A DNA stretch of 64,000 bases from Hyaloraphidium curvatum SAG 235-1 (taxonomy: Eukaryota; Fungi; Monoblepharomycota). Below are positions 19,531-53,192 of this stretch, piece after piece; positions within the stretch are counted from its first letter, which is position 1; each line of letters starts with the position of its first letter. The stretch lies in contig JAIVFI010000010.1 in NCBI GenBank assembly GCA_025558095.1, positions 372,001 through 436,000 on the forward strand, in the 5' to 3' direction. A model generated the notes under the pieces. The model was not told the DNA's origin and did not search any database. It saw only the letters and a list, made by a program, of their open reading frames with translations. The position numbers and the translations under genes are program-made.

Positions 19531-22500
19531 CTACTTCTGCCTGAAGTTGCAAAGCCAGAGTGCAAGGTAAGCCACGATGAGCCACCCGACGCCGGTGATG
19601 AAAGCAACGGCAATGTAGAACCTAGAGGGCAAAATCGATCAGATCGAGCGCATTCACGGCGCCAGAGCAACGTACCCGGTGGAGGTCGTTGCGTAGTTGT
19701 CGATGCCGAAGCCGACGATGGCGTTCGAGGCGTTCCGAATCCACCCTGGATTCGTGAATCGCGGTTAGGTGCGAATCAACGGTGCTGCGTGCGGGCAACC
19801 CACAGTCGAAGCCGAGCGACCCGGCAACGTACTGCTCGCCGTTCTGCGAGAAGCAGGTCAAAGTCGGGGGAAGGGGGTTGGCAACGAGGTAGTTGGCAAA
19901 GCCAAGGAGCGATGCCGCGCGGACGGTCTGGTTCAGCGCCAGGGTGAGACCGTCGGTGTTCGACACCGGGATGTTGGTCGCCGCCGAGAAGCCCGCGGTG
20001 GCGAGCGCCGTCATCTCGTCCAGGTTCTGGAGCACCGGCGCGGCGTTGTTCTGCACGGCGGCCTGGGCCCGCGCCTTCTGGAGAGCGCTGAGGGCGATCG
20101 CGTTGCGGTAGAGGGAGAAGATGGTGGCGTTGGCCTCGGCGCCGGCGTTGGGCCAGATGTCGAAGCTGTTCATGGTCTGCACAAGCGCAGGGCTGGAGGC
20201 CACGGCAAGGGTAGTGAGGTTCTTGGCGGCGCCGCCGATACCGCGGGAGCTGATGCCAGTGGTGTCGAAGGGGAAGAGCTCGCGGTCCAGGCAAAACAGG
20301 GGCTGGCCGACGCACTCGTCGCGCATGGTGGGCACGAACCAGAGGCGCACATACCTGGATCGCGGCGCGGATCAGCGTTCTGGACGGGTGCGACAATCAA
20401 GATCGGCCAACTCACGAGAACCACTGCCAGAAGGCCTTGACCGACGGGTGGCGCACAAACAGGAACTGGTCGGTGATGTAGAAAGCTCCAAGCAGAATGG
20501 CGTAGTAGTAGTGCAGGCTGTGGGCACGGTCAGCGGCGGATATGCAGCGCGAGAGCAGCAAATCCCACGTGAAGATCGCGTTGGCGTAGGGGATCGATGC
20601 GGCGACGTAGGCGCACACCATGTTGATCGCGGTGGACGCGAACGCCTCGGGGATCATGTAGCCGATGTAGCGGCCCGTGTAGACCCTGCCACCGCAAAGA
20701 AATGTCAGGCTACGGTACCCAATGTTCCAGAACTTCACTGCTTCACGCACCAGTTCGACATGGAGAACATGATGCCGCCGACGACGGACTGCGGAGGAAA
20801 GAGTTAGAACGCAAGGGAAGCGGGCGGCAGCCGACCAACCATGACGGCAGCGATGAAGATCCACTCCACGAGGAACATGACCAAAAGGTGGCCGAGGCGG
20901 TGGTAGTAGCCGGCGGCCTCCTCGTGGTAGTACATCTTGCGCTTCTCGAGCCAGTAGGCGATGGCGGCGGAACCGAAGCCGGGCACCATGAGCTTGTACG
21001 CAAAGCCCTCGGAGGCGCGGGCCTCGTAGCCGGCAACGTTGCGCTGGAGGTTCCAGAAGGCGCCGCCGAAGAAGAGGCCGACGAAGGCGCCGGCGACGAA
21101 GCGGGAGGTCGACATGACGGGGTTGCGGATGTAGATCATGACCTGGCGCTTGAGGAGCTGCCAGAACTGGACCCAGACCGGGGCCTGCTGGTAGAAGCCG
21201 AGGCGGTCCGCGAACGTGGGGACGGTGTCGGCCTTGGCGATGACCTCGTTGATCGAGCCCTGGCCAGAGTGGATGGCCTCGACCTTCTTGTTGAGGATCG
21301 CGGACTCCTGCGACGCTTCCCAGCATTCGATCAGGCGGTCGGGCTGCGCGGCAAGAGCGTCGGCGTAGATCTCGGCTGGGGTCGATCAGGCTGTCAGCTC
21401 CGGGATCACGGGTGCCGGCGCCGCGAGGCTACTCACCGGGGTTGCCGGCAACGGGGATGCCGAGCGACTCGAAGTAGAGGATGGCGTCGGTGACGCGCCC
21501 GAAGTAGCAGAGCTTGCCCTTGGCGAGCAGCAGGAGGTAGTCGAACTGCGAAAGGATGGTGTACGAGGGCTGGTGGATCGTGGCGACGCAGGCCAGCTTG
21601 CGCAGGCGCGTGACCTCGACGACGTTGGCGATGATCTCGCGGCCGGTGTTGGAGTCGAGGCCGGTCGTGGGCTCGTCGAGGAAGAGCACCGAGGCGACGG
21701 GCAGCAGCTCCATTGCGACGTTCATGCGCTTGCGCTCGCCGGTCGAGAGACCGCGGACGAGCTGGTTACCGATGCGGCGGTCGGCGCAGTAGCCGAGGCG
21801 CATGACCTCGAGCACGTCGCTGCACTGGAGACGGGGAGATCACAAGTCGATCAGCGGTCGCGCCTACTGATCAGGCAAAAGCACGCACCCTGGCTTCGCG
21901 CTGGGCGGTGCTCCAGTCGGCGGGCAGACGGAGGGCGGCGCCGAAGCGTAGCATCTCCTTGCAGGTGAGCTCCGGGGGCAGCAGGTCGTCCGAGGTGACG
22001 TAACCGCTCTCCTTGATGAAGGTGCGCTTGGACAGGGGCGCGCCGTTTAGACGGACGTCCTGGGTCCATTTGCCGGTGGTCTTGCGGTAGGCCAGCACGT
22101 CGAGGAGGGTCGACTTGCCGGCGCCCGAGGGGCCCATGATCGCGAGCGTCTCGCCGGGCTGCGGGCCGGTGGCCAAGTCAGTGCTGTTCGACCCGGAACG
22201 CGTGCGCCCTCGGCTGCGCCCGCCGTGAAAAGGATGCCCACCTTGCAGTAGCCCGACACGGCGTCGAGGAGCACCTTCGGCTTGCGGTCCACCTTGAGCA
22301 CGCACGAGATGTCCTTGAACGAGAAGAATGCCGGGTTGAGCTGGTTCGGGTCCGTGACGGCCCACGACGCCAGCCGCGAGATCTTCTCGCCGGCCTTGGG
22401 CAGCGCGATGGACGGCTCGGTCGACATGAGCTCCTTCTCGGGCACGGCCTCGCCGGCGACCAGCGCGGGCGCGGCGTAGTTGTCGGCCGGCGCGGAGGCG

Positions 22501-22981: not shown

Positions 22982-25550
22982 ATGGAGGCCAACGCTGCTG
23001 CCGCCGCCGCCGCCGACGCCATGGCGTCGAACCACGCCGGCTACACGGTGCGCCGCCCGCCGCGCGCCCGCCGGCCCGCCTGACCCGCCGCAGGTCACCT
23101 GGGAGAACGTCAACTGCCGGATCAAGACGGGCAGCCTCTTCCGCGAGAAGAAGGTCGTGCACTCGCTCATCGACAACTCGGGCTTCGCGCGCCCCGGCGA
23201 GTCGCTCGCCATCATCGGCCCCTCGGGCGCCGGCAAGACCACGCTCGTCGGTGGGCATCCCGGTGCCATTTGCCCCGAGGGACGGCGGCTAACGGGATTC
23301 CAGACATCCTGTCGCAGCGCAAGTCGCTCGGCGAGGTCACCGGCGAGGTCCTCGTCAATGGCCAGAAGCCGGACATCTTCTTCAAGCGCCGGCTGGGCCA
23401 GATCACCACCATGATGGCGCACATCCCCACGATGACCGTCCGCGAGACGCTGATGTTCGCCGCCGAGTGCCGCATGCCCCGCCACGCGACCAAGGAGGAG
23501 CGCATCGCCCGCGTCGACGAGGTGATCGCCGGCCTCAAGCTCACCAACGCCCAGAACACCCCCGTCGGCGACGAGCTGATCCGCGGTGTCTCGTCGGGCG
23601 AGAAGAAGCGCACCGAGGTCGCCACCGAGATGATTGCCCGCCCGCGCATGCTCTTCCTCGACGAGCCCACCTCGTGAGTCGCCGAGCTTCTCCGCTGTTT
23701 GATCACTTTGCTGATCCACCGCCGCCCTTCACAGGGGTCTCGACGACTTTGGTGCGCGCTTCACCATGGAGCTCGTGCTCAAGTACGTCAAGTCGGAGAA
23801 CGTCTGCGTCGTCATCGTCATCCACCAGCCCTGCGAGGCCGTCTTCAAGCTCTTTGACAACACCATGATCATCTGCGAGGGCCGAGCCTGCTTCTTCGGC
23901 CCTGTCGCCGCCGCCGAGTCGTACTTCTCCACGATGGGCTACCCCACGCCCAAGCTGCAGAACCCCATCGAGCACTACCTCGACGTCTGCTCGGCCAACG
24001 CGACCGCCGCCGCCGACTACTACGACAAGTCGCCCCTCGCGACGGCCAACCTCGCCGAGATCGCCCGCCTCAAGGGGCAGACCTACGGCGCCGTGCGGTA
24101 CTCGGAGTACATCGTCGAGCGCCCGTGGTGGGACCAGATCCGCCTGGTCGGCTACCGCTGCCTCATGCGGTACTGGCGCAACCCGTCGACCTCGTGGGGC
24201 CGGCTCTTCATGTTCACGCTCCTCGGTCTCCTGTTCGGCATCCTCTTCCTGAATGTGAGTGGATTGGTTGCTGCTGCCGCCCCGGAGTCCGACTGATCAC
24301 TGGTTGCGCCATCAGCTCACCAACAACCTAGCGGGCATCCGTAACCGCCTCTCCATCAGCACCACCTACGCTTTCCTCGCCATCTACGTGGCCGTCGCCT
24401 CGGTGCCCCAGTTCCTCGAGGACCGCGAGCTGTACCTGCAGGAGCTCGACACCGCCTTCTACTCGACTCCGCCGTACTGGATCACCTACCTCCTCATCGA
24501 GGGCTGCATGTGCACCGTCATCACCACCATCCAGATGGTCATCATTTGGTTCATGGCCGGCTTCGACGCCCAGTACTTTGGCCCCGTCTACCCGATGATG
24601 TTCGTGCAGTTCTGGCTCGCCGTCGCCGTGTCGCAGGCCTGGTCGGCCTGGTGCAAGACCCTCGTGCAGGCCTACACCGCCCTCTGGGCCGCCGGCCTCA
24701 TCTTCTACGCCTTCTCGGGCACCCAGGCGCCGCTCGGCACCGTCACGCCCGCCCTGAGGTGGATGGCAGACATCAACTACTGGCGTTGGGCTCTGCAGTA
24801 CATCGTGCGTATTCCGGGGACCGGGCTTTGCACCCGGAGCGCACAGCTGACCCTCCCGCGTCTCCCAGATCTGGCAGGTGATGAAGGACTACATTATGGA
24901 GTGCCCGACCACCTCCTCCACTGCCTTTGCCGGCCCCACGGCCCGCGGCTTCGCCAACGCGATGAACGCGACCTTCGTCGCCGACCCCGGCAACGCCGTC
25001 AACGTCGCGCAGTTCTGGGCCGGCATGGAGCTCATCTTCTCGAACGCCGTCGCGGGCCAGTTCCCCGGCGCGACTCCCGTCACCCAGGCCGCCCTGGTCG
25101 GCAACAGCAACGCCGTGGCCTCGGCCATCGCCCCGATCGCCAACAACGCCTCGTTCGGCCCCACGCCCGACCGCTACATCCCGGCCCTGGGCCCGTACAC
25201 GCTGTACAACAACGCGTCCGTCACGGCCCGCGAGGTTGCGCAGAACTCGGCCGCCTTCCCGCCCGGGTACTTCTGCCCCGTCGGCCAGGGCCGCGACTTT
25301 GTGCGCAGGTACCGCGACCTGTCGCCCGAGAACCCCGCTACCAGTGAGTTTGGCCGCATTGCTGCGCATGCGCCGCATCTGAGGCCTCCCGCTCCGCAGC
25401 CAACATTGCCTACGCCGTCAACGTCTGCCTGTTCGTCTTCTTCGCGACGATGGTGCGTTGGCTGCTTCCCATTTGCCTTTCGCGTCGTCTCACTCTTTCC
25501 TTCAGACGTTGTTCGGCCTGATGTTCTCGCGCAACTACCGCAAGAGGTAA
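22982..25550 (+). CDS. ABCG-family half transporter B (NBD-TMD), spliced
   Basis: Walker A GPSGAGKTT, TVRETLMFAAECRMP, signature GVSSGEKKR, Walker B LFLDEPTS, VIHQP, YWRNP and a TMD; ends FGLMFSRNYRKR* at 25550. Confidence 0.93.
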
Positions 25551-25889: not shown

Positions 25890-28800
25890 TCAGCCTCTTC
25901 GCGGCACAACCTTGCTCAAGGAGTCCGCTCCCGGGCGCGGAAGAGGGGTCGGGGTGGTGGGATGGGGTCGTCGGGGAGGCGGAACCGGCGGTTTTGAGGC
26001 GGTTTTGCGCGCGGGAGCCGGCAAGACCGAAGGAGTTGGCCGCGTCTGCTTGCTGCTTGCATCGCTCTTGGACGCCGTGCCGTTCCCGATCCTGTTGCGC
26101 CACGCAGGCAACACCAGGTTGCGGTACGGGTCCGCGCCGGCCGTCGCTGTGCACGCACGCAAAACGCATCAGTTCGGCACCGAGCTTTCGTGCGAATCAA
26201 CACACCGATCGTCGGCGCCCCACTGCTCGGCTCGCCAGCATCACCGTCCCGCTGGTCCGGCCGCTCGTCTGGAGGCTCGTCGTATGCCGGGTAGAAGATA
26301 AAGAAGCCCTCCCTGACCAAACGAGGCGACTTGTCCGACGCCCCGTCCGGCTCCCCGTCCGGCTCCTCGTCCGGCTCCTCGTCCGGCTCCCCGTCCGGCT
26401 CCCCGTCCGGCTCCCCGTCCGGCTCCCCGTCCAGCTCCATCGGAGGCACTGCTTTTCTCTTGTCCGCACGACGCGCAAGTGTGAAATCCGGAGAGCGCCG
26501 AGACGACAGGACCGTGTCCAAAGTGTGCGCGATGTCCGGCGCTACTTCGGGATTGATCAGTGCGATCGCACGCAGGACGAGCACAAAACGCAACCTACGC
26601 CTGAAGGGAAGAGAGGAAGCCTGCACCTTCCGCACTTCGGCAGCCCGCCCCCGATCGCGTTCCTTAAAAGACCAGGGAAGGATGTGCGCAGATCAGACCC
26701 CAGTCGAGGGACTCGCGCGCTCCCCCCACCCTGAGCGCTTTCTGCTGCCTCTCCTCGGCAAAGATCACCTCGCCCGGCCCATCAACCCGCGTCATCATCT
26801 CGATACGGAACTGCAGGGAGAGGCGTGAGATCGGAGCACCGCAGGCAACACGATCGCACGCACGTGGGGGTCGTCGTCCTGGATCCCGAGCGGATTGCAA
26901 AGGGCCTTGACGGTGCGCTGACGGACGATCAGCATTCGAAAACAACGTGAGGCCAATAGCCTGGTAGTACCTGGCTCGACTGTCCGAGATCCGTTTCGGT
27001 CTCCAGCCAGCCCCTCCGGCGCTTGGCGATCTTCCGTTTGCGCGGCCCGTGCAGCAGCGTGGCGTCGTCCTGGAGCGAGTCCCGCTTCCGCTTGGCGCTT
27101 GAAGGCCGGTGCGGACCCGGCAGCCGCACGACAGTGTCGGGCTCGACGCGTTGGTTCTTCGGCTTGGTGAAGGGCATCTCCGCGGGATCCACCAGCTCGG
27201 AACTGATATCCGAGTTCCGATCCCCCGATCCCCGATCGCTCTGATCCTGCTCCGGCCCGCGAGGGCTCTCGTCGAAGGACCAGTTGTCCGACAGGTCGCC
27301 GCCGCCGTCCGGGTTCCTGCCGTCCGAAAGAGCGTCGATCAACTCCAGCTCGACAGGCTCGCGCCGGAACTGCGAGCCGATCTCGCCGCGGTCCAATTCC
27401 TGCTCGGCCTGCGAGAAGATCTCGTCGCGGTTCGACTTCAGCGCCGAGTCCTCTTCCTCTGAGTCCCGGGACCCCTTGCCGCTGCCGGACTCGTCTCTAT
27501 CCCTGCCCGAGTCATCGTCGTCCGAGCGCGGATCCTCGTCGTCGTTCTGGGGGAAGAAATCGTCGCCCTCGTCGTCCTCCGAAGGCCAATCTTCGTTGTC
27601 CGGCTTCGAATCGCCGGCGCCGGAACCCGAATCGCCGCCGTCCGGCTCCTCGTCGTCGTCGACCCGGTCCGGCTCGTCGGGCTCCTCGTCGTCCCGGTCC
27701 AGGTCCTCCTCCTCGTTCCGGTCCGGCTCGTCGTCGTCCGGGTCCGGCTCGTCGTCGTCCGGGTCCCTGGGCTGCGAGGGTCCCGATCTCTCCGAGTTCG
27801 AATCCTCCAGATCCTCGAGCTCGACCTCGGGCATGTCCTCCTCCTCCTCGAGCTCCTTGGCCTGCTCGAGGCCCTTGACCGGCACGTCGTCGAACTTTCC
27901 GTCGTGGGCCATCTGGAACGTGACGGCCGGCGGCGCCTTGCGGGGCTTGAGCTCCTCGTCGACGTGCGTGTAGTCGAACGGCGTCAAATCCAGGTCCCTG
28001 TATTCGGGAATGGTGCCGACGGCGTTCGGCGGGGGGCTGGTGATGACGCTGAGCTTGACCCTCGCGGCACTGCGACGCGGCGGGAAGGAGTAGCTGAAGC
28101 CGACCTTGGCCCTGCCGCCGGCCTTCTCGCTCATGTACTCGGCGATGGCATTAGCTTGCACCGCGGGGTACTGTCTGAGGCCCCGATCGGGCAGAAAGGG
28201 TCTCGGAACACGCTTGAAGTGTTTGGGCAGCCGGTCCAGGACCATCCGCTGCGACATGGTGGCATGGCCGACAGCAGCAGTCCGAGACCAGTCGAAAGCG
28301 TCACGGCACTCCTCGGAAGCAATCTGCTCGCCGGCAATGACCTTCAGCAAGATGGCCATTCCGGTCATGGTCGCCGCGGCCTTGATCAGCGGGCCCAAGA
28401 ACTCGTTCTGGAAACGGTAGGTCTCCTCCATTCTGAAGAGCCACAAGAGCTCCACCGCCTCCGGGCCATAGAGCCCGCGCATGGCGGTCTCGGCATCCTT
28501 GTACGAAGCCAGCTCGGCCACCGACACCATGCACGAGATCAGGCACGATTGGGTCTTCGTCAGGCGGCGATTGAGCTGCTGCAGCATCTCTGGTCCGGCG
28601 CGCCCGAGCGGCGACCGCGAGTCCTCCGCGACAAAGAACGCCGCCGGCTCACTGAGCTCCAGGAAAAACCGGTCGAAGACGTCCTTGGCCTCTCCCCGCT
28701 CGCCAGCCGAATGCGCGGGAAGCTCGAGCGCCAGGATCTCGAGCCCGGGCACGATCCGATCGACGAGCGCGGCGAACGCGTACATGATCTCGTTCTGCAT

Positions 28801-31530
28801 CTGGAGCGCCGGGAAAAAGGTGTCCTCGACGACCGCGCTCCGCGAGTTCCTTCCGCCGGAGAGGCGGGGGACGACCACGAGCTTCTTTATGCCTCGAAGC
28901 AGGATGGGCAGGATCACCTGGAGCGGGAGACAACGGGTCAGCGAGTTTCAGCGAGGAGGTGCGCCGGCAAAGGGCCAGCTCACCGTCTGGGCAAAGAGAA
29001 GCGGCAGCCACTCCGTTCCCTCGCGAAGCTCATTCAGGAAATGCGTCTTTGCCGCCGTGATGCGCAGCCGGGAGGTACGCTCCTTGTTGAGGTTTTCGCC
29101 CCAGCGCATGTCGTTCAAAACGCTGCCGATGGACTGAACCCTGAACTGCTCGATGTCGGCAGGGTGCAGCGTGTTGCCTCGCCAACCGAAGATCCGCCAC
29201 CCGAGGTCCGTGGCCAGCTTGAGGATCGACAGGAAGACCTCCCCAAGCCGGGTTAGGCGGAACGGCGTGGAGATTATCAGGACCTTCAGCCCGTTCCGGA
29301 TAGCCTCCATGTCCAGCGGCGCGCTGCCCCTTTTCTGCACCAGCAAGTCGTTCGGGATGTCGAGGTTCAGCACCCTGATCAGGGCATCTCGTTGCGTGGC
29401 ACCCGGCTCCGAGGCGCCCGAACCACATTCGCCGAGGAAGAGGAAGAGCCTGAGCTTGCTGAGGTCGAACAGCCGCTCGACGTGGGCGCAGTTGTTGTAC
29501 AGCTGGTAAACAATCAGGCGCAATGCGTCCGCCCCCATCTGCGACGCCCTGCCGAAGTCGACCATCACCGCCGGCGCCAGACGATCGAGCGGCCCCGGCC
29601 ACGCCGGCTTCGGCATCGGGCCCCGGGCCTTGCGCTTCACCGGAGTGGCGAACTCGCCGGGGTTGATCGCGAAATCGGGCGCCTCGTCGAGGCGCTGCTC
29701 CGCCGCCGCCGCCGCCGCCGCCGCCGCGGCCTCGTCGACGGCCTCTTCCCCCGCCTCCTCGGCCGAGTCCAGGAAGCGCCGCAAGTGCTCCGGACCGCAG
29801 CATTCGGGAGTCAGGCGCTCGTCCGGGGGTCCGCGCCTGCAACGCCAGCGGGTCAGTTGGCTCGCGAGGGCTCGATCAGCGCACCCACTCGATCATTTTC
29901 ATGCAATACTGGCACGCGATCAGGCCGGACATGTAGCCGAGCACGTACTCGTCCGTCTGGGAGACCGTGAGGTAGTAGTAGAGGTCGGACGACGGCCCCC
30001 TCTGGCGGAGGAAGTCCTCGCGGACCTCGCTGGCCGCGGATGCATCGTCAGCCCGCGATTGCCGCCGGACGCTCGCGCACCCACCGCTCGAAAACCGGGA
30101 CGAACCAGATGTAGTCGGAAGGTTGGACGAGGTTGGGGTTGCAAGGCAGGTCCTTGCAGTACTGCGCGCAGCCGTTCCTCCCGTTGACGATGTACCAGAC
30201 CATGTAGCCACACCCCTCGGGGCAGACGCGCGGCTCCTGGCCGTACTTCTTGCAGAGCGCGAGGTAGTGCGGTGCGCAGCACCCGCTGACGCGTGCAGGT
30301 TCCATCAGCTGCGCCCGGCGAACCGCGATCGTGTGCACCCACTGCTGCCCTTTCGAGAGCGGCTCGCCGCAGATGCACTTGCCCGAGCGGATCGCCAGGC
30401 GCACTTTGTCCTCGGGCGACTCGCCGAACGGCGTCGTCGAGTTTTTGGGCCGCTCGCCGATCGGGAGCTGGAAGTCGGAAGAAGGCGGGACCCAGTCCGC
30501 GTAGGCCCAGGCCGGAATGTTCTTGGATCGCTTTTCGGCGCAGCGCCCGGTCTTGGCGTAGGTGCCGCACGCGTAAACGTACTTCCGCAGCATCATCTGT
30601 CGGCATCCGCCCCTGCACACGGGCACGGACTTCCCGCTCTGCTTCAGCTTCTGCAGGCAGCCGTGGCCGCAGGCGGTGCGCCTCCTGGTTGCGCAATCCG
30701 TCAGGGCGCTCGGCGCGGGAGCGCGAAAGCAAAGCCACTCACGCCGCCATCGGATTGCCGCAAACCTCGCAGGTGTCCGTCTTCTTCTCTTTTGCGGCAC
30801 CTCCGGTCTGCTGCTTCTTCTGCACGCCGCCGGGAGGGTTCCGCCGGGGCCCGGGCCTTTTCTTGAGCGAGTAAGCGCACGCGAGTCCGCGCTTCGCGCA
30901 CTGGTTGCAGGTCGGCTTGGCCGAGTTGCATTTCCGCCGCACTTGGCCGCATGCGTCGCAAACGCGCCTGAGCTGCGCGGGCGCGCCGCCGTGTTGGGCG
31001 GGCCTCGTGCCGCCGATCTGCTCGACCGCCTCGTCGTCCGCGGTCCGCTGGTCGGGGGTGGGCGACGCCCCCGGTCCGCGGCGAGCGCGCTTGCGAGGCT
31101 TCTCGTCTCCGTCCTCGTCGGGCTCGGCCCCCGTGCCGGGCTCGCTCTTCTCGTCGTCCGTCCCGCTCTCGTCGTCCGTCTCGCTCTCGTCGTCGTCGGC
31201 CTCCCCGTCCTCGGCGTACTCGCTGTCCGAGGCGTGCTTGCCGAAGAAGCTCGGGAACATCGACTCGGCCGAGGCTGACTCAGCCGCGGGCCCCAGGACG
31301 TCCGACATCGCCTCGTCGTCCGGTCCGCTTGCTTCCGAGACGTCCGTCGGCCACAGGTCGGAGTGGACGCTCAGCTCGGAGGACACGTCGGAGCCGGCGT
31401 CGGGCGCCGCGCTCCCGCCGCCCGCGCCCCCGCCGCCCGCGCCCCCGCCGCCCGCGCCCCCGGCGCCCGCGCCCGCGCCGGCGCCGGCGCGCCTATTCCC
31501 GGTCTTCTTGCCGAGGCTGGGCCGCGCCAT
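25890..31530 (-). CDS. Large multi-exon orphan protein: Zn2Cys6 cluster, several Cys/His zinc modules, two tandem serine-recombinase-like domains and an acidic tail; 3' exons tentative
   Basis: The ORFs join in frame across GT-AG introns at 30685-30742, 30030-30084, 29837-29888 and 28918-28983 (checked codon by codon). Zn2Cys6 is CDACGQVRRKCNSAKPTCNQCAKRGLAC. Resolvase-like motifs are DFGRAS..YQL..ECGSG..QRDAL..VLIISTPFRLTR and VVPRLS..LQMQ..AHSA..FFVAEDSRSPLGR. Confidence 0.7.
26340..26432. repeat. 12-bp tandem repeat (ccccgtccggct variants, ~7.5 copies) encoding DGEP/DEEP on the minus strand
   Basis: Directly visible repeat; the ORF track reads DGEPDGEPDGEPDGEPDEEPDEEPDGEPDG. Confidence 0.9.
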
Positions 31531-31664
31531 CGTCCGATCGGGAGCGAAAGTTGGTCGAGTCGATCGATGGCGTGTCAGCAATCAACCACACAAACCGCCT
31601 CCCGCCCCCCGGGGAAACCAAAACCATTCTTTTTCAAAAATCACGGGCCCCTACAATTCTCGGC

Positions 31665-31736: not shown

Positions 31737-33928
31737 CGTGACGATGGACGGGTACAGCAGCGTGGTCAGGAAGTCGGACTGCAGGCGGGGTCAGCTGAAT
31801 GGCCGACCCGATCACAAAGAAACGACTCACGTATGCCGGGGTGGCAATGGTGCTGAAGAGCGCCTCCTTGGCGGCCAAGAACTTGGACGTTTTGAAAGCC
31901 ACCTCCCCTACAGACTTCTTGAGCTTGTCCGTCTCCTCGTCCAGCAGCTGCTTGAGCCAGTCGGCCGTGACGGTCTTGCCCTCGGCCGTCTTGACCTTTG
32001 CACGAGTGACGCTCTTTGTCAGCTTCCGCAGTAGCCGCCGCACCGACTCCACTCACATTGTTCTTCTGCCACTGCCAGAGCTGCGAGCGCGAGATCTCGG
32101 CGGTCGCGGCGTCCTCCATGAGGTTGTGGATGGGCACGCAGCCGTTGCCGCGCAGCCAGGCCTCCATGTACTGAAGGGCGACGTTGATGTTGCCCCGGAT
32201 GCCGTTCTCCGTCACGGCGCCCTTGGTGTCGCGCGTGTTGAGCAGGTCGGCGGCAACGACCTTGACCTCCTCGCGGCGCACAAACAGCTGGTTGGGGCCG
32301 GGCATGTACTGGTTGAAGATTTCCATGGCGATCTTGACCAGGTCGGGGTGGGCAACCTGGGAGCGTTCCGGAGCCTTCCGTGAGCGACAGCGAGGCCGGA
32401 GATGGTCGGCAAACCCACCCAGGTGCCGTCGTGGCCGGCCTTCACTTCTCTCAGTTTGTCGGTACGAACCTAAATCGGAGGAATGGAGGAGCCAGCAATG
32501 CCGCCATACAATCGAAAACGCACCTTGTTCATCGCAGCCTCGTTGGCGGCGGCGTTGTCCTTGATGGGGATCTGCGCGGCCATACCGCCCATGGCGTGCA
32601 CGCCGCGGCGGTGGCACGTCTTGATGAGCAGGCGCACGTACGCATCCATGAAGGGCGTGGTCATGGTGACGTCGGCGCGGTCGGGAAGCGTGAAGGCGGG
32701 GTTGTTTCGGAATTTCTTGATCACGCTGAAGATGTAGTCCCAACGACCGCAGTTCAGGCCCGCCGAGTGGTCGCGGAGCTCGTAGATGATCTCGTCCATC
32801 TCGAAGGCGGCCGGGATGGTCTCGATCAGGACGGTGGCGCGGATGGTTCCCCGCGGCACGCCGAGCATGTCCTGGGCCATGTTGAAGATGTCGTTCCAGA
32901 GCCTGTACCGTCTGCGGTGAGCCAAGGATCATGGTCAACTGCCGCCAGATCGCCCACCTGGCCTCGAGGTGCGACTCCATCTTGGGCAGGTAGAAGTACG
33001 GGCCGGCGCCGATCTTGACGGTCTGCCTGGCGTTGTGGAAGAAGTAGAAGCCAAAGTCGAAGATGGAGCCGGAGCAGGGCTCGTTGTCCACGACGAAGTG
33101 GGCCTCCTCGAGGTGCCATCCACGGGGGCTGAGACGGACATGAGCGCCGCTCGGTCCGAAGCCACAGACTACCCACCGAACCATCAGCGTCGCAAGCTTG
33201 CCGTCCTTCCTCAGGTAGTAGCTCTTGCCGTTGGGGCCGGGGTTCTGGAACGAGATGGTGCGCTCGTTGGCGTCGCGCAGGTTGACCTGGCCATCAATGT
33301 TGTTCGACCACGTGGGGGCGTTCGAGTCTAACACAAGGACCATCAGAAGACGCAACAAACGCTTCGAGGGAACCGACCTTCGAAGTCGGCCATGAACACC
33401 GACGCGCCCGCGTTGAGGGCGTTGATGATCATCTTGCGGTCCACGGGGCCGGTGATCTCCACGCGGCGGTCCACGAGGCCCGGAGCAGGGGCGGGTCCCT
33501 TCCACGCATCGTTCTCGCGGATGTGGCGGGTCTCGGGCAGGAAGTCGAGGAGGGCCTGCGCGCCGGAGTCAGTTCTGCCTCCCTCCCCGAAAGCCCGCCC
33601 CACGCACCCCAGCATCGAGAGCCTTCTGCCTCTCCACGCGCCTCGCAAGCAGCTCCTTCCGACGTCCGTTGAACACGCGCTGCGAGCGGCCGGCTCAGCG
33701 AACCGGCGATGGGCGGCGAGGCGGACCCCGCACCTGGAGCGTGGCCACGAAGGTCTGGGCCTCCAGCGAGAGAATGTCGGCCTGAGCGCCCGACACGGCG
33801 CCGAGAATGGAAACACCGGGGATGGTGGCGACCACTGGAGAGGCGGGGCGCGATGCAAGGCGGGGGCAAGGCGTCGGCAGCGCCATGTCAGGCACCGTCG
33901 CTCCCGCGCGGCTCCGCAGCCACCCACT
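31713..33928 (-). CDS. MLS1: Malate synthase A (glyoxysomal, C-terminal PTS1 AKL), many introns; start ambiguous
   Basis: [106 protein letters not shown]; last exon [21 protein letters not shown]. Confidence 0.96.
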
Positions 33929-36307: not shown

Positions 36308-36557
36308 GGCGGCGGGTGCGGGGCGTGGCTGGCCGTGACGGTGTGCGGGTCGGGCCGGGAAGCGGAGCCGCGCCGGATCAAAACACGGCAATCCCTACGC
36401 GAGTCTTGCAGCGTCGGCGGTTGCGGACGCGTCCGATGGGCAGCCGGCTGCCGGGAGACCGCGGTTCATGTAGGGCGCTGGCGGCCCGGAGGGGCGGCGC
36501 TGCGGGAACGCGTTGAGGGTCGAACCACGAAACTCCGGCGTGCCCCCGACGCATCCG

Positions 36558-39500
36558 ATGGCCGGGACGCGGCCGGGAGGCAATGCCGCGGAGGGCCTCT
36601 TTTCCTTTGCTCGGCTGGACGAGTCGGAGCCCGCGCCGTCGCCCGCCTCGGAGGCACGGACGGCGTCCCCCGGGGCCGGCATATTCTCGCGCTGGCTCTC
36701 GCGTGTCACTCCGTATGGATCGAAAGCGGCCGGGCAGCAGTCGGACGGAGCTTCGGGGAGCTCGGCGACAAGTGCGCCAAACGCCCGCCGGTTTTCCTCG
36801 ACGCCGGCCCGGTCGTCCCCCCTGGCCGCCGCGCAGTCCTCCGACCGAGCGAACTCCACCGAGACGCGGTCTACAGGCTCTGAGGCACGCTCCACGGGAT
36901 CCGAAAGCGGCAGCACTTTCTCGGGATCCAGCACGCAGACGGCAATGCCCGAGGCACGAGAGACCGTGTCGGCTATTGGCTTCAACAGACCGAGGCATGA
37001 CTCCGAAGCCGCCTCGACGACCTCATTCGGAGGGTCCAGCCCGCAGAGCAGCATCCTATCGCCCTCGGTGCACCGGGCTGGATCGGGTCGCGTTGTGTTT
37101 GGACGCCAGGGACCGGGCTCCTCGCCCCAGCGGGTGTCGACCTCCAGGGCCGACAGCGCGAGCGACTTGCTGTCGCGGAGGTACTGGATGAGCGACGAGT
37201 CGGCCAAGGAGTGCTACGACTGCAAACAGTCATTCACTGCCTTCAATCGACGCCATCACTGCAGGATATGTGGGCTCATTTTTTGCAGCAAGTGCTCGTC
37301 CAATTTCGTGCCGGGACAGCCGTTCGGGTCGGAGCGTGATGTGCGGGCGTGCAACTATTGCGCGAACCGCCTTTCCATGCCCACGGATTCCCCCATTGCT
37401 ACGCCCCGCCCTCTGAGCACGACGGAGTCGCTTCTCTTCGCGCCGCACATGCTGGAAGCTGCCGTCAACGCCATTGCGGGGATTCCGTTTCGACAGGGCA
37501 GCCGCGTCAGCGGAGATCTTGCCACCACGCCGACGGAAGCGTCCCCTGTCGCAGCCGGCATGGGTCGCCTCTTCGGCGTGCGATCGTCGCCGTCCATCAA
37601 CGAGCCGGTTCCGTCGGGGTCGGCCGAACCGGGTCTCCGCAGCAGCCAGCCCGAAACCGCTTCGATCAACCCCCCGGACGGCCCCGATCTCGCCGTTCCC
37701 AGCTCGCCCGATCGCCATTCTTCGCCGGCGCTCGTGGTGCCTTCCTCCTCGTTCGACGTCTCCGACAGCGACGCCGACGACGAGTGGAACTACGGGCTGG
37801 ATCCCGTCGGACGCGCCCCATCCAAGCGCAGCCTCCGTTCCGAGGGCGGCGCGAGCCCGCCGCCGGGGCTCGACGGCGTGAGGGCGCAGTTCATGCGGCA
37901 GCGCAGCCGCAGGACGGTGTCGGGGAAGGCAAGGGTTGCGGTCGGGAAGGACGTGTGGGAGGCGAGGAACAGGAGCGCATCTCCGGGGTCCAGGAGAACG
38001 GCGGTACCGAGGACATTCCACGAGCTGGACGTCGCAGGGACCTCGGGAGCACATTTGGTGGGTTCGCTGTCGGTAATTGCTGGCAGGTACCCTTTGGGCT
38101 CACACCACACGCACAGCGCAAGATGATCCGGCAGATTCTGTCCGAATCGCAGATCGTTGAGTCGGAGGGCTGGGACGACATCATCTTCCGGTTCTCGACC
38201 GAGGTGGCCCGCCGTGTCAACTTGGACGTCTCCGCCGGCGACGACCCCGACATCCGGCAGTACGTCAAGGTGAAGCGGATACCCGGCGGCTCGCCCTCTG
38301 GATGCGAGTACGTGAGTGGCATCGTCATCTCCAAGGCCGTCGCGCACAAGTCCATGGTCAAGCGGATCCGGAACCCCCGGATCCTCCTACTCAGCTTCCC
38401 GCTCGAGTACGAGCGGGTTGAGAACCAGTTCGTTAGCCTGGAGAGGGTGCTTGCCCAGGAGCGCGAGCACCTCGGCAACCTGGTTGCGCGGATCCGGGCG
38501 ACGGAGCCCGACGTGCTGCTGGTCAGCCGCTCCGTATCGCGCCTCGCGTCCGATTTCCTTCGGGAGGCGGGCATCGCAGTCGCTTCGAACGTAAGGCTGG
38601 AAGTGCTCGAGGCCATCGCAAGGGCGACGCAGGCGGACGTGGTTCGTTCGATCGACCGGCTGGCGTTCAATCCCCAACTGGGCACCTGCAGCGCCTTCGA
38701 AGCGCGCTACTATGCCATGCCCGACGGCAAGAGGAAGGGGTACCTGTGGTTCGAGGGATGCCCGCCCCACTTGGGTTGCACGATCGTTTTGCGCGGCGGC
38801 GATTTGGACAAGCTGACGAGGATAAAGCAGGCGGTCACGCTGATGTGCCTGGTTGTGCACAGCCTGAGGCTGGAGATGTCGCTTGTCAACGATCAGTACG
38901 CGATGATGGTTCCGGCTACCGGCGCCGACGATGCGACTGCGGCCGCGGATTCGGACGACAAAGCGGACCTTGCGAGTCTCGCAATGGAGCAAGCGGATGC
39001 GGCCGAGAATTCCAGCGTTCACGTCGGTACCGTCGACGGGTCTCGGGCGAAACTTGCGTCGAACCTCGGCGGTTCCCACGCTGCAGGGCCACCTTCCCTG
39101 CGCACGTTGGCTCTCGCTGTTGAAGATGCAGCGGCAATCCGCCGTTACTTTGCCTACTCCGGAGTCATAATCTCGGGCTCGCCTAATGTGAGGTTCCCAC
39201 CCCCGTATCCCCTCCGCCGGCGACTTTGGGAGTGCCTGGGTCATTTGGCGATATCGCGCGATACGGAGCTCTCCGAGTCTCTTGTCGCCCGCGTGCTGCG
39301 TTTGGACCATTTCGAGGTCATCGCTCCCGCCGACACTGAACAGCTGAGCCCTTTTGCACACCAGAACCTGGCCATCCTTGCCTACCTCATCTGCCCCGGG
39401 AACCCGGTGCCGTGTCAAGCGCCCGAGATCGTGAGCGTGGACTACTACGGCGCCACGGACCTCACCATCGGCCAGTTGGTGCAGGGCATGTGCGCACAGG

Positions 39501-42203
39501 CTGCGATCCGATGTGCCACGAAAGGTTGCGACAAGCCTTACCTTGCGCACTCGCGCGCCTTCGTTCACGGTCGCGGCCAAGTTGGCATGCAGGTCGAAAA
39601 GAGGCCTTGCCCGATCCGGGGGCTGGAGAACAGCATGCTCATGTGGAGTCAGTGCCGCATCTGCAACAAGTCTACGCCGTGCATAGCCATGGGCGAGGAC
39701 ACGTGGAAATTTTCGACGGGGAAGTACTTGGAGCTTACATTCTACTCCGCGGGGCTGCACTGCCGCGCGGACCTGTGCCCGCACGACGTGCAGAGGGATC
39801 ACGCGCGCTTCGTCGCCTACCGAAACCTTGCCGTGCGCTTCGAGTACGCGCCCATATTGACTTTCGAGCTCGCCACGCCGCCGTTGCGTGTGCAGTTTGA
39901 CGACGACGTCAAGATGCGGCTGAAGTCCCAGGACATGTCTTCGCTCAAGCAGACGATCGTCCGCTTCCACGACGCCATGCTCGACAGACTGAAGTCCGTC
40001 GCGGTGGGCGACACCACCGTGGCTCCCGCCAAGCTGCAGGCTTGCAGGGACGACCTGGCCGAGCTCCAACGCAAGGTCGTGGTGGAGAAGAACCAACTCC
40101 TGGACTTGCTGCAGAGCACCTTTTCCGCGTCGAGCCCCAGCGACACCTTGGCCATCAATGCGGTGCAGCGCTCCTTCGTTGCCCGATTCAAGGAGTGGGA
40201 TGCCGAGTTTCAGAACTTCGGCAAAACGTATCTCCAGCCGGAAGCAAAGGATCTGCGCCGCATGACGCTCCGCAGGGTGTTTGGGGACGATCGTGACACG
40301 ACCCCGCCGACGACGCCGTCCACCATCCCTGAGGCTTTGAGCTCTTCAGCCGGGGATGATCCTTCCCGCGGTATGCCCGGTGTGGGAGAATCCCCCAAGA
40401 TGGTACACCGTCAGTCCACGGATTGGCAGGGGTCCCGGAATGAGAGGGCTGTCGACCTCGACCTGGGCTCCCCGGTTCTCGGACTTTCATACGCGGCAGA
40501 TCCCGATGTTGACGAGGCGTCAGACTCGGAGACTCAGGACAGGGGCTACGATCTTGACGGCGTGACACTTCCCCGTCCGCCAGTGCGAGCCAATTCTCTC
40601 GAAGAGTACGGAGATTCAGCTCTGCTGGCCCCAGAGACAAAGGATACATCACCGGCAACGTCAGTTTCTCCATGGTCCGCGTACGACATCGCGCGCACCA
40701 CGGACGAAGATGGGGCTCCCGGCGTCAATGAGCTGAGCGGTGTCGTTACCGGCGACAGTCAGGATGCTACAGCAAATGCCTCGCAAGAGAAAGCGAGCCT
40801 TTTCCAGACTGTGGCTGCGCTTTGGACAGGTGCCACCGCGACTTGGCAGCCTTTGGTCAACCCCTTGTGAGTAGGCCAGCCTTGTCCGTGCTTGCCCCAA
40901 CGACCGATCCCCTCCAGTCCTCCCACAGAGCACGTTCTGCCGGATTCCTTAGTCGTAATCCGCGAAGACGAGCCGTCCTCGCTGATCGCCTACTCTCTGA
41001 GGTACGGCATCGTTCGCATCCCTGGACTTGTTTTGACTTGAGAAGCACGAGGGAGTACAAGATGCGACTCGACCTTCTCAAGGAGGCGGGTTCGGCTCAG
41101 AACATGGCGTCGGGGAAGGAGGGGCAACCGATGAAGCCCGTAGGCCCCAAAGCCTCTGTCCCGGACTCGCCGAAGGACGTTGGTGTGGCTCTTGAGGACA
41201 TGCTGCTCAAAGCCGCAGGCCACAACATGCGGATCGAAACGTCGGACGGCGCAACAGCCATGATGTGCAAGATCTTCTACGCCGAGCAGTTTGACGCTCT
41301 CCGTGAAGCGTGCGGTGTGGATCCAGCTGCGTACGTGTCGAGCTTGGCTCGTTGTCTGAAGTGGGAATCGGCTGGCGGCAAAAGCGGGTCGACATTCATG
41401 AAGACTCGAGGTGGGCCTGTCGACGCAGGTCATGCATGGCAGTCACTTACTATCCGCTTTCTTCAGACGAGCGCTTCATCATGAAGGAGCTGCCCAAGCC
41501 CGAAATGGAGGCGTTCCTCCAGCTCGCCCCGCAGTACTTCCGCTACGTCTCCCAGTCTCTTTTCCATTCTCTTCCGTCTGCGATCGCCAAAATCTTCGGG
41601 CTCTACCGTGTAAAGTTCAAGAATCCGGCGGGCAAGATTGTGAAGCTCGACGTCGCCGTCATGGAGAACCTCTGGTTCGGCCGGAAGGTCACCCGCGTGT
41701 TCGATCTGAAGGGTTCGCTGCGGAACCGCATGGTCGCAAGCACGGGCAAGGAGAACGAGGTCCTTTTGGATGAGAATCTCATCGAAAGTGGGTGTGAGGC
41801 CGGTTCGGCGGCGTTGACGCCACTAAAGTCCGCCGCAGTGATGTACAAGGAGCCTTTCTTCCTCCACCCCACGGACAAGTCGCTATTGCGAGCCTCGTTG
41901 CAGAATGATACCCTCTTCTTCACGAAGTGCAACATCATGGACTACTCCCTACTCGTTGGGGTCGATCACGCTTCGTCCCAGCTTGTCGTCGGCGTGGTAG
42001 ACTACATCCGGACCTTCACCTGGGACAAGAAGCTTGAAAGCTGGGTCAAGGAAACCGGAATTCTCGGGGGCGGGCGCGACCCGACCATCGTGGGACCCCG
42101 CCTTTACCGCAGCAGGTTCCGTGAGGCCATGGAGAAGTACTTTCTCGGCGTGCCCGACAAGTGGACCCCAGTGCCGGCAGGGACGCGGAACCTGCTGTCG
42201 TAG
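36558..42203 (+). CDS. FAB1: 1-phosphatidylinositol-3-phosphate 5-kinase Fab1/PIKfyve, spliced
   Basis: FYVE domain YWMSDESAKECYDC..RRHHCRICG, CCT-like YVKVKRIPGG, Cys-rich CHK region, and PIPK motifs GGKSGS, FDLKGSLRNR, MDYSLLVG and DYIRTFTWDKKLESWVK. Confidence 0.96.
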
Positions 42204-49258: not shown

Positions 49259-49327
49259 CGGATTGTGCGCGTGTCGCGTCGCTGCGCAGGACGCGCCCTG
49301 AACACGCGTCCCCGCAAGCGGAACCCG

Positions 49328-49870
49328 GCCAGACCGACGATCCGGGGCGGCCGCGCAAGCGCCAACGCCGGCACGAGACCGATTTGCGGGACCGCAGCCG
49401 GGGGAAACGGTGGATGCCCCGGATGTCCTGCGCAGCCTTGGAGGGCCACGCTCATAATTTTCTCACCACCAAAGGCCCGCCACCGCCGCCGCGCTATTTC
49501 TCACTCGCCGGCACGAAAAAGTTGAGGCTCTTTAACCTTGCACAGGAGCAAACGCTTACCAGTGAAGTTCCGACTGAGGTGGCGTATTTGCTAGTTGAAA
49601 ACTCCTTCCATACCGGTGGCCAGGCCCCCTTCGGGGGGCCGGGTCCAATTTCTGGAAACCCTCTGTTGGATGCGAAAGAGCGGTGAAACGAACGAAGCGC
49701 GGGGTACCAAACGACTCGGATCGCTGGCTGTGGAGGGCGCGGGAGTCTCGTGCGCGAACTCGCTGCTGGGCCCGAGGCGCGGTCGGTGGACCGCGGGGCT
49801 CGCTGAGCACCCGGGGGACTGCCCAGCCTTGCAACCGCAAAAAGGCTGTGTCCGTGGTTTCTGTCCACTC
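49328..49870 (+). repeat. Direct duplication, copy 1 (~545 bp), carrying a U4 snRNA gene and its flanks
   Basis: Near-identical to 52650-53192, with a core at ~49420-49704 that appears identical. Confidence 0.95.
49534..49664 (+). ncRNA. U4: U4 spliceosomal snRNA, copy 1
   Basis: 5' AACCUUGCACAGGAGCA (U6 stem II pairing strand), K-turn hairpin ACC-AGU-GA-AG..CU-GA-GGU, conserved UUUGCUAGUUGAAAACU (stem I), GC hairpin GGCCCCC-UUCG-GGGGGCC and Sm site AAUUUCUGG. Confidence 0.9.
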
Positions 49871-52140: not shown

Positions 52141-52649
52141 GGCCTCTCCAGAAAGGAGGGCAAAACGACAGTCCACGAGGGCCGTGGGCGTCCGTGTGGC
52201 AAAGCAGGCACAATTGGGACCTCGAAGACTGAAGCGCCAAACCGGGCGAAGGAGCAAGAAGAAACAGACGAGGGCACGGTGCGGCGTGCCTCTTCCTATA
52301 TGAAGCTGTTGTCGCGGAGCGCTTGGCCAACATCGTGCGACGTGTCGCGCAAGGACCGTTATGTGTACCCGCATAGGGAGCGCGTTCCCGCAAGACCAGT
52401 TTCGCTTGGGAGAAAGCCCAACAGCGACGCGCGGAGATATGGCGGAGGACAGGACGGCACAATGCCAGTACCTTTGGTCGCGGAGCGCTCGGGCACGCGG
52501 TGGGCCATCTTGTTGCGACTTTCAGGAGGATCCTTCACAGATGGCGCGGTTGCTGCACTTCGATGAACGCCTGGCTCATTCTCAACACAACGCAAAGAGG
52601 ATCTGATAGATGGGCGATGGTTGGACTTGCCACCCCGCCGCCGAAGCTA

Positions 52650-53192
52650 GCCAGACCGACGATCCGGGGCGGCCGCGCGAGCGCCAACGCCGGCACGAGA
52701 CCGATTTGTGGGACCGCAGCCGAGGGAACGGTGGATGCCTCGGATGTCCTGCGCAGCCTTGGAGGGCCACGCTCATAATTTTCTCACCACCAAAGGCCCG
52801 CCACCGCCGCCGCGCTATTTCTCACTCGCCGGCACGAAAAAGTTGAGGCTCTTTAACCTTGCACAGGAGCAAACGCTTACCAGTGAAGTTCCGACTGAGG
52901 TGGCGTATTTGCTAGTTGAAAACTCCTTCCATACCGGTGGCCAGGCCCCCTTCGGGGGGCCGGGTCCAATTTCTGGAAACCCTCTGTTGGATGCGAAAGA
53001 GCGGTGAAACGAACGAAGCGCGGGGCACCAAACGATTCGGATCGCTGGCTGTGGAGGGCGCGGGAGTCTCGTGCGCGAACTCGCTGCTGGGCCCGAGGCG
53101 CAGTCGGTGGACCGCGGGGCTCCGCTGAGCCCCCGGGGGACTGCCCAGCCTTGCAACCGCAAAAGGGCTGTGTCCGTGGTTTTTGTCCACTC
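52650..53192 (+). repeat. Direct duplication, copy 2, carrying a U4 snRNA gene
   Basis: Matches 49328-49870 at an offset of ~3321 bp, with scattered substitutions only in the flanks. Confidence 0.95.
52855..52985 (+). ncRNA. U4: U4 spliceosomal snRNA, copy 2
   Basis: Identical by eye to 49534-49664, with the same U4 motifs. Confidence 0.9.

Follow-up and report, generated by a model that had tools for sequence, protein, structure and literature searches.

A 64,000-nucleotide stretch of the Hyaloraphidium curvatum SAG 235-1 genome (contig JAIVFI010000010.1, positions 372,001 to 436,000; the window below, with positions counted from its first letter) carries on its minus strand a gene, at 26795..31530, whose product holds two tandem alpha/beta domains that resemble the catalytic domain of serine recombinases in motif positions and family profile. 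A preliminary description made from the DNA letters had read this locus as an intron-containing fungal gene, and we compared it with assembled RNA contigs of the public run X1. These contigs skip six introns, all of the GT..AG type (30685-30742, 30286-30342, 30030-30084, 29837-29888, 28918-28983 and 26918-26970), which shows that the run contains spliced RNA and that the gene is expressed. The intron between the two domains, 28918-28983, is among them, which bears out the earlier reading. The locus is an expressed, spliced seven-exon nuclear gene of this member of the Monoblepharomycota, with its ATG at 31530-31528, its stop codon at 26795-26797 and ~1464 codons in between. In an exon-by-exon check every exon was open in its derived phase, giving a product of ~1464 residues, and the frame shows a coding signal (GC3 0.86-0.87, GC2 0.43-0.45).

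Exon 1 (30743-31530) holds a Zn2Cys6 binuclear cluster DNA-binding domain at 30856..30963, identified by Pfam as PF00172 (Zn_clus; E 1e-06, 29.2 bits against a cut-off of 21) at residues 207-242 of the open reading frame (ORF) 30739-31581. Exons 2-4 (30343-30684, 30085-30285 and 29889-30029; span 29889..30684), joined by RNA, encode a Cys-rich region with no Pfam match and of no known family. Exon 5 (28984..29836) begins with an Ala/acidic linker that contains a GCG repeat (29688-29742) and continues into domain 1, which together with its helical tail occupies 28984..29571 and is supported by ESM Atlas features, by hhalign comparison with domain 2 and by alignment A5. RNA contigs bridge the exon 4/5 junction and also cover 28980-29562. 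A phase-0 intron of 66 nt (intron 5, 28918..28983), supported by an RNA joint, separates domain 1 from domain 2, whose alpha/beta core lies at 28507..28890 (exon 6 residues ~10-137). It is followed by a helical region at 28030..28506 that is kept among the paralogues described below (alignment A6 runs to residue ~296) and for which AF2 predicted helices at residues 142-265 with low confidence. The rest of exon 6 (26971..28029) translates into a long Asp/Glu-rich low-complexity tail with basic KRKR patches near its end; the direct-repeat families D1/D3 reflect the low complexity of this tail. Exon 7 (26795..26917) follows the last intron with 40 codons and the stop, the RNA joint 26917->26971 keeping the translation in phase.

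RNA contig depth was ~272 over 26971-29562 and 27-40 over 29706-30885, and one contig ends at 29562, barely inside the start of domain 1. This step could be due to an abundant short transcript coding for the two domains only, or to 3' bias combined with an assembly break at the GCG repeat. The introns themselves share features: the same unusual donor, GTGGGTGC, opens three of the six (30286-30342, 30030-30084 and 29837-29888), and branch sites of the CTGAC or CTGAT type occur in all, ~15-25 nt before the AG. Together, donor and branch sites may provide a splice signature useful for the H. curvatum genome.

Serine recombinases are an enzyme class of bacteria, archaea and phages, and the resolvase fold consists of a mixed sheet of order 2-1-3-4-5 with flanking helices. 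The likeness of the H. curvatum domains to the small serine recombinases (gamma-delta/Tn3 resolvase, Hin/Gin; PF00239) lies in the succession of a strand, Arg-x-Ser, a helix, Ser-Gly, Arg, a further strand, RLxR, a helix and a strand. Translation of the minus strand from 29571, and not from 29570 as first described, reads AVMVDFGRASQ...YQL...LFLFLGECGSG...QRDALIRVL...GLKVLIISTPFRLTRLG...LGWRIF, in agreement with the sequence quoted earlier. The Arg-Ala-Ser of domain 1, equivalent to R8-x-S10 of the resolvases, lies at 29542..29550, with Arg at 29548-29550 and the Ser codon TCG at 29542-29544, the position already assigned to it. Farther on, R-L-T-R at 29248..29259 provides equivalents of R68 and R71, with Phe at the position of D67, and hhalign places this stretch on DRLgR of a recombinase profile. 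Domain 1 thereby retains equivalents of R8, S10, S39-G40, R45, R68 and R71. Domain 2, read from 28887 to ~28600, runs KKLVVVPRLSG ... FFVAEDSRSPLGR; its Arg18-Leu-Ser20, counted from the start of exon 6, lies at 28858..28866 (Ser codon 28858-28860), and alignment A6 places D99-S-R-S-P-L-G-R106, with Pro at the position of R68, at 28600..28623 as the equivalent of DRLxR. The bare motif string was rejected as evidence for a recombinase: the expression R.S..SG..R..RL.R matches 7 of the window's 205 open frames with a length of 150 aa or more, which is chance level, and 0.3% of shuffled versions of exon 5. The motif rises above chance because paralogues conserve its positions.

Genome searches, first with exon 6 as query and afterwards with a profile, retrieved three paralogues, at C27:451685-452518, C4 ~523000-528600 and C25 ~404500-407400; we refer to them by these contig labels and to the gene under study as C10. 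BLASTP of domain 2 gave E-values of 4e-5 for C10-C4, 1.5e-9 for C10-C27 and 4e-26 for C4-C27, and C25 was retrieved by the profile search at E 4.7e-9. At least four paralogues thus make up a gene family in the H. curvatum genome. Both domains are present in C4 and C25, and the phase-0 intron between them has the same position and phase in C10, C4 and C25. C27 may be truncated, with its start perhaps close to, or at, the third strand of domain 2. Upstream of it, and on the same strand, a complete ORF for a tyrosine-kinase-like protein kinase (L003:2565-3302, minus strand of contig C27; PF07714, E 8e-46) stops ~460 bp short of the paralogue. We rejected a kinase fusion: a stop codon closes the kinase ORF and the DNA beyond it has a lower GC content, therefore the two are likely separate genes. 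Beyond the domains the family varies in layout. At their C-termini, C4, C25 and C27 carry a CxC-rich module and a tail that is acidic or basic, unlike C10, whose Cys-rich part and zinc cluster are N-terminal; no zinc cluster was detected in the stretches read of the three paralogues. A weak match around 'YADWVP' links exons 2-4 to an upstream exon of the C4 paralogue (pairwise E 0.002).

The conserved positions coincide with those of the recombinase active site. None of the six full domain copies departs from Arg-x-Ser, which reads GRAS, IRVS and VRTS in domain 1 and PRLS, DRSS and PRES in domain 2. In domain 1 the two residues fall on columns R41 and S43 of alignment A5 in C10, C4 and C25, with 186-201 residues between the Ser and the conserved intron, and in domain 2 they are residues 18 and 20 of the exon in all three. 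A nucleophile-type Ser two residues after a conserved Arg is thus present by motif and position only, the profile of this segment not being significant. The second Arg of RLxR (the R71 equivalent, R113 in alignment A7) is the sole residue that never varies across the seven domain copies; in domain 2 it corresponds to R106 (A6), which is the same in the four paralogues. The site equivalent to D67-R68-L-x-R71 reads DRVSR in C25, SRLTR in C4, SRFTR in C27 and SPLGR in C10 in domain 2, and FRLTR in domain 1 of C10, so the canonical form occurs only in domain 2 of C25 and the D67 position of C10 is Phe or Ser. All this holds at a divergence of under 25% identity. The preliminary description had made conservation of R-x-S and RLxR among homologues one test of its proposal, and among the paralogues both are conserved. 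Before the paralogues turned up, the single sequence had looked like chance, which is a methodological lesson.

The proposal that a second, diverged copy follows the intron was well supported by hhalign. The domain 1 and domain 2 profiles align with a score of 28.8 (E 0.0028), whereas column shuffles gave 12.4±1.9 with a maximum of 20.5, and 0 of 100 reached it. We then compared a merged family profile with a recombinase profile built from 96 phage serine recombinases. The score was again 28.8 (E 7e-4, probability 26%), against 10.5±2.1 for shuffles (maximum 18.1; 0 of 120 reached it), and the aligned part corresponds to beta3-DRLxR-alphaD-beta4, the family stretch falling on DRLgR; hhalign in global mode was uninformative. 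Shuffling also destroys the strand-helix pattern, therefore a control with real proteins was added, consisting of 1,811 ORFs from 120 phage loci, among which 114 code for recombinases. In this set the family hidden Markov model (HMM) placed recombinases at ranks 1-4 and in 16 of the 25 best places, and the domain 2 HMM in 15 of the 25 best. In a separate comparison with shuffled recombinases, a score of 6 bits was reached by 6 of 100 real sequences and by 1 of 3000 decoys. For the C4 paralogue, the sole Pfam match at E<=10 was Resolvase (profile positions 37-100; 15.3 bits, E 0.021, within a range of 13.3-15.3 bits and E 0.09-0.021), below the gathering score of 23.3 bits; this match is no stronger than unrelated chance matches in other searches, although the family it picks out is the one named beforehand. 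Finally, language-model features from the ESM Atlas assigned exon 5 (domain 1) to Resolvase in all 30 of its 30 nearest clusters, with a score of 0.92, which lies in a range that covers chance matches and distant relatives alike, and 160 of 256 features shared.

The two tandem domains are copies of one another that have diverged. Altogether, these comparisons suggest, with a probability that we put at roughly 0.6, that within this host gene they go back to the catalytic domain of a serine recombinase. Descent from serine recombinases, considered by itself, is probable to the same degree or slightly more so. Probably, too, the family is lineage-specific, with its tandem domains aimed at DNA by the Zn2Cys6 cluster in this member. 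Formal membership of PF00239 is another matter: C10, C25 and C27 have no match and C4 stays under the 23.3-bit threshold, so our claim is that the domains are derived from recombinases and perhaps work like them.

A number of results weigh against this descent. Exons 5 and 6 of C10, like C25, have no Pfam Resolvase match at E<=10, so that the Pfam/HMMER comparison with PF00239 recommended by the preliminary description came out negative for this gene. A six-frame PF00239 scan of the 31.9-Mb genome at E<=10 passes over the locus, PDB sequences gave nothing at E<=10 for its exons, and searches of PHROGs and NCBIfam gave nothing either; single exons served as queries in these homology searches. 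The custom HMM of 96 phage serine recombinases scores the exons of C10 below many shuffles, and hhalign of C10 alone against the recombinase profile reached 16.3 against 14.3±2.5 for shuffles (z 0.8). With the family profile, no recombinase appeared among PDB sequences at E<=10, and chance matches there score as high (phi12 P4 NTPase 0.42, ArgRS 0.15, also ferritin). The significant similarity to recombinases spans only ~40 residues. The beta1-RxS-alphaA segment scores no better than shuffles against the recombinase profile, no E-helix could be detected (the C-terminal part of domain 1 scored 8.4, the shuffles 10.7 on average), and the domain 1 HMM alone did not enrich recombinases, either in a shuffled-decoy test or among the 1,811 phage-locus ORFs. 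Two alignments made by eye, of the beta1 segment and of 'NKERTSRL' with the 'ERT' of the recombinase E-helix, were dropped when profile comparison gave them no support. In C10 itself, D67 is replaced by Phe in domain 1 and R68 by Pro in domain 2. The 160 Atlas features shared by domain 1 are fewer than the 170 typical of true members, and domain 2 had no Atlas feature match. Homologues outside the H. curvatum genome were not found, domain 1 being the part searched exhaustively. The sole HMMER match in 1.84 billion representative proteins was spurious, a bacterial Ig-like repeat protein in which ECG[ST]GY.EPGAT matches one stretch of the query 11 times. Word-based searches with exon 6, a domain 2 alignment and the genome's own Resolvase also found no outside relatives of the family, a blank that is weak evidence because such searches are limited by word sharing and length windows.

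If the domains do derive from serine recombinases, they may have kept their chemistry, and the strongest form of this proposal is that the protein is an active eukaryotic serine recombinase, a covalent pseudo-dimer that cuts both strands via phosphoserine links and rearranges chromosomal DNA where the zinc cluster directs it. Arg-x-Ser in six of six full copies and the R71-like Arg in seven of seven survive a divergence of under 25% identity, and we therefore argue that they may still act on phosphate; perhaps the conserved residues cleave DNA through a phosphoserine. Domain 1 retains most of the catalytic equivalents listed above, the gene is transcribed and spliced, and true serine recombinases in the same genome are a possible source. 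On the other hand, domain 1 has Phe in place of D67 and domain 2 has Pro in place of R68. The E-helix, a long helix with conserved acidic and basic residues which builds the dimer and tetramer in known serine recombinases, gave no signal. Pfam detected no helix-turn-helix, recombinase or zinc-ribbon domain of the known architectures. Predicted as a complex, domains 1 and 2 yielded an ipSAE of 0.00 with an uncertain fold of the partner, which is evidence neither way. We consider an active enzyme of this kind doubtful, as is catalysis of any sort by the present-day protein, and active recombination equally or somewhat less likely. The earlier designation as a eukaryotic serine recombinase holds in so far as the family profile resembles the recombinase core and R-x-S and RLxR are conserved, but C10 itself has no Resolvase match, its E-helix is not detected and its fold comparison is tied.

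The mechanism that such a protein would follow can be sketched from its predicted layout, which runs from an N-terminal Zn2Cys6 cluster through a Cys-rich region, the two alpha/beta domains and a helical region to an acidic tail. The zinc cluster would bring the protein to specific DNA sites, where the two recombinase-type domains would pack intramolecularly, like two resolvase subunits on one site, and the conserved Arg-x-Ser, together with the RLxR arginines, would bind the DNA phosphodiester and possibly attack it. In its fullest version, this would be a host-encoded, zinc-cluster-targeted tandem recombinase with two catalytic subunits per polypeptide, derived from serine-recombinase transposons of the same genome and used for programmed site-specific DNA breakage or rearrangement, and would be the first cellular, non-transposon eukaryotic enzyme of the serine-recombinase superfamily; we regard this version as improbable.

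The main rival to recombinase descent is a lineage-specific, duplicated Rossmann-like alpha/beta domain, unrelated to serine recombinases, inside an orphan zinc-cluster regulator, with motifs that would be convergent and serve, for example, phosphate or nucleotide binding. Structure comparisons speak for it, apart from the AF2 model of exon 5 as a single sequence, which was unusable (pLDDT 36). In Foldseek the best matches were periplasmic-binding, glycosyltransferase and LacI folds, none with E<0.016, and gamma-delta resolvase came at rank 50; in the Atlas shape search Gtf3 and LacI-type folds lead, with Resolvase at row 10. For domain 2, the structure comparison includes Resolvase, and six arginyl-tRNA synthetases also stand in the VIA top 50, one of them with a sequence match at E 0.15. 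The structural comparison with resolvases suggested beforehand therefore came out mixed: Resolvase is among the matches, but generic Rossmann-like folds rank equal or higher, and the predicted match to the resolvase fold is tied with generic alpha/beta folds. Library-wide E-values all above 0.01, the chance frequency of the loose motif (7 of 205 open frames) and the lack of signal in the N-terminal and E-helix parts point the same way. Against it, three differing methods, namely a profile HMM (C4 paralogue), language-model features (domain 1) and structure comparison (domain 2), lead to one family, named in advance, among thousands, the family HMM puts recombinases at ranks 1-4 of 1,811 real ORFs, and the conserved positions match the catalytic ones of recombinases exactly. 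On balance an unrelated Rossmann-like duplication seems unlikely.

A third possibility, namely that a Gal4-type fungal transcription factor has here its usual 'middle homology region', diverged beyond recognition, would suit the position of the region between an N-terminal Zn2Cys6 cluster above the Pfam threshold and an activator-typical acidic C-terminal tail with basic nuclear-localisation-like patches, but is very improbable, as neither PF04082 nor PF11951 was found at E<=10 in any exon, AF2 predicts the domain region as alternating strand and helix rather than all-helical, two recombinase-like domains stand where that region would be, and C4, C25 and C27 carry the same domains with no zinc cluster detected in the stretches read.

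Measured against known systems, the domains we take to be recombinase-derived depart from each in several respects. They share with the small serine recombinases a profile likeness over beta3-DRLxR-alphaD-beta4 but differ in lacking any Pfam match in this gene (best paralogue 15.3 bits against a cut-off of 23.3), a detectable E-helix and a C-terminal helix-turn-helix, in having two domains per chain with D67 or R68 replaced, and in belonging to a 1464-aa eukaryotic protein whose gene has introns. Also among the closest known systems are the large serine integrases (Bxb1, TP901-1 and the PDB 9dxd/9dxf/9y66 integrase), yet their architecture of a catalytic domain followed by PF07508 and a zinc ribbon (PF13408) found no match at E<=10 in exon 6 or the paralogues. 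TnpA of the IS607 family is a serine transposase that occurs in elements of eukaryotes and giant viruses (PMC3627910, PMC4058570, PMC6188088), and eukaryotic serine recombinases have been known only as IS607-type transposases (PMC3627910). Unlike these elements, the present gene has no MerR-type helix-turn-helix and no TnpB/Fanzor partner, is single-copy, sits among housekeeping neighbours without bounding repeats and carries its domains in tandem.

The premise of the preliminary description that in eukaryotes only IS607-type elements have serine recombinases needs amending, since this genome contains true multi-copy Resolvase-domain genes. Nine places elsewhere in the genome (loci L004-L012, on contigs C9, C22, C4, C34, C46 and C2) match PF00239 at E 1e-14 to 2e-4. 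Four of them (L006-L009) are ~99% identical over at least 2.8 kb aligned and therefore represent a multi-copy element, with PF00239 matches of 1e-12 to 1e-14, and one product is 99% identical to the NCBI entry 'Resolvase [Hyaloraphidium curvatum]' (P0002, 332 aa). These genes are a possible, and plausible, source lineage for a domesticated copy. Counting against such a link, BLASTP found no similarity between C10 and the genome's own Resolvase, nor between the latter and the family, hhalign of C10 against the own-genome recombinases gave probabilities of 0.1-0.2%, and hhalign of the family against the four Resolvase sequences of the genome gave no signal. A fungal Resolvase alignment searched against genome contigs retrieved no related loci.

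The gene is flanked in the window by an ABC-2 type transporter gene (24259-25347) and a malate synthase gene (31766-33505), with a gene for a FYVE and Cpn60/TCP1-domain protein (PIKfyve/Fab1-like) at 36513-40870 in the flanking region. No repeats bounding the gene were found in the 64-kb window and the neighbours are ordinary, and a repeat-bounded mobile island was rejected. Since the gene belongs to a paralogue family and lies among ordinary host neighbours, it is a gene of the host rather than a transposon. Other repeats do occur in the window. A tandem 12-nt repeat (GGCTCCCCGTCC-like, ~10 units) lies at 26325-26444, ~350 bp past the stop codon of the gene; two inverted repeat pairs, 21667-21777 / 23560-23670 (111 nt, 71% complementarity) and 22101-22163 / 23188-23250 (63 nt, 86% complementarity), are nested at ~22-23.7 kb; and a direct repeat of ~550 bp, in three blocks at 92-99% identity, is found at 49318-49870 and 52640-53192, 3.32 kb apart.

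If the proposed descent is correct, intron-bearing, expressed host genes with two recombinase-type domains per chain would represent a novel architecture within the serine-recombinase superfamily, to which the fusion of one member to a fungal zinc-cluster DNA-binding domain adds further novelty, and they would be a likely case of mobile-element machinery domesticated in an early-diverging fungus. Should the protein be inactive, it would show the reuse of a recombinase fold for DNA binding or regulation. Should it be active, it would be a self-contained, sequence-targeted recombinase that bears on the origin of programmed DNA rearrangements and could serve as a compact scaffold for genome engineering.

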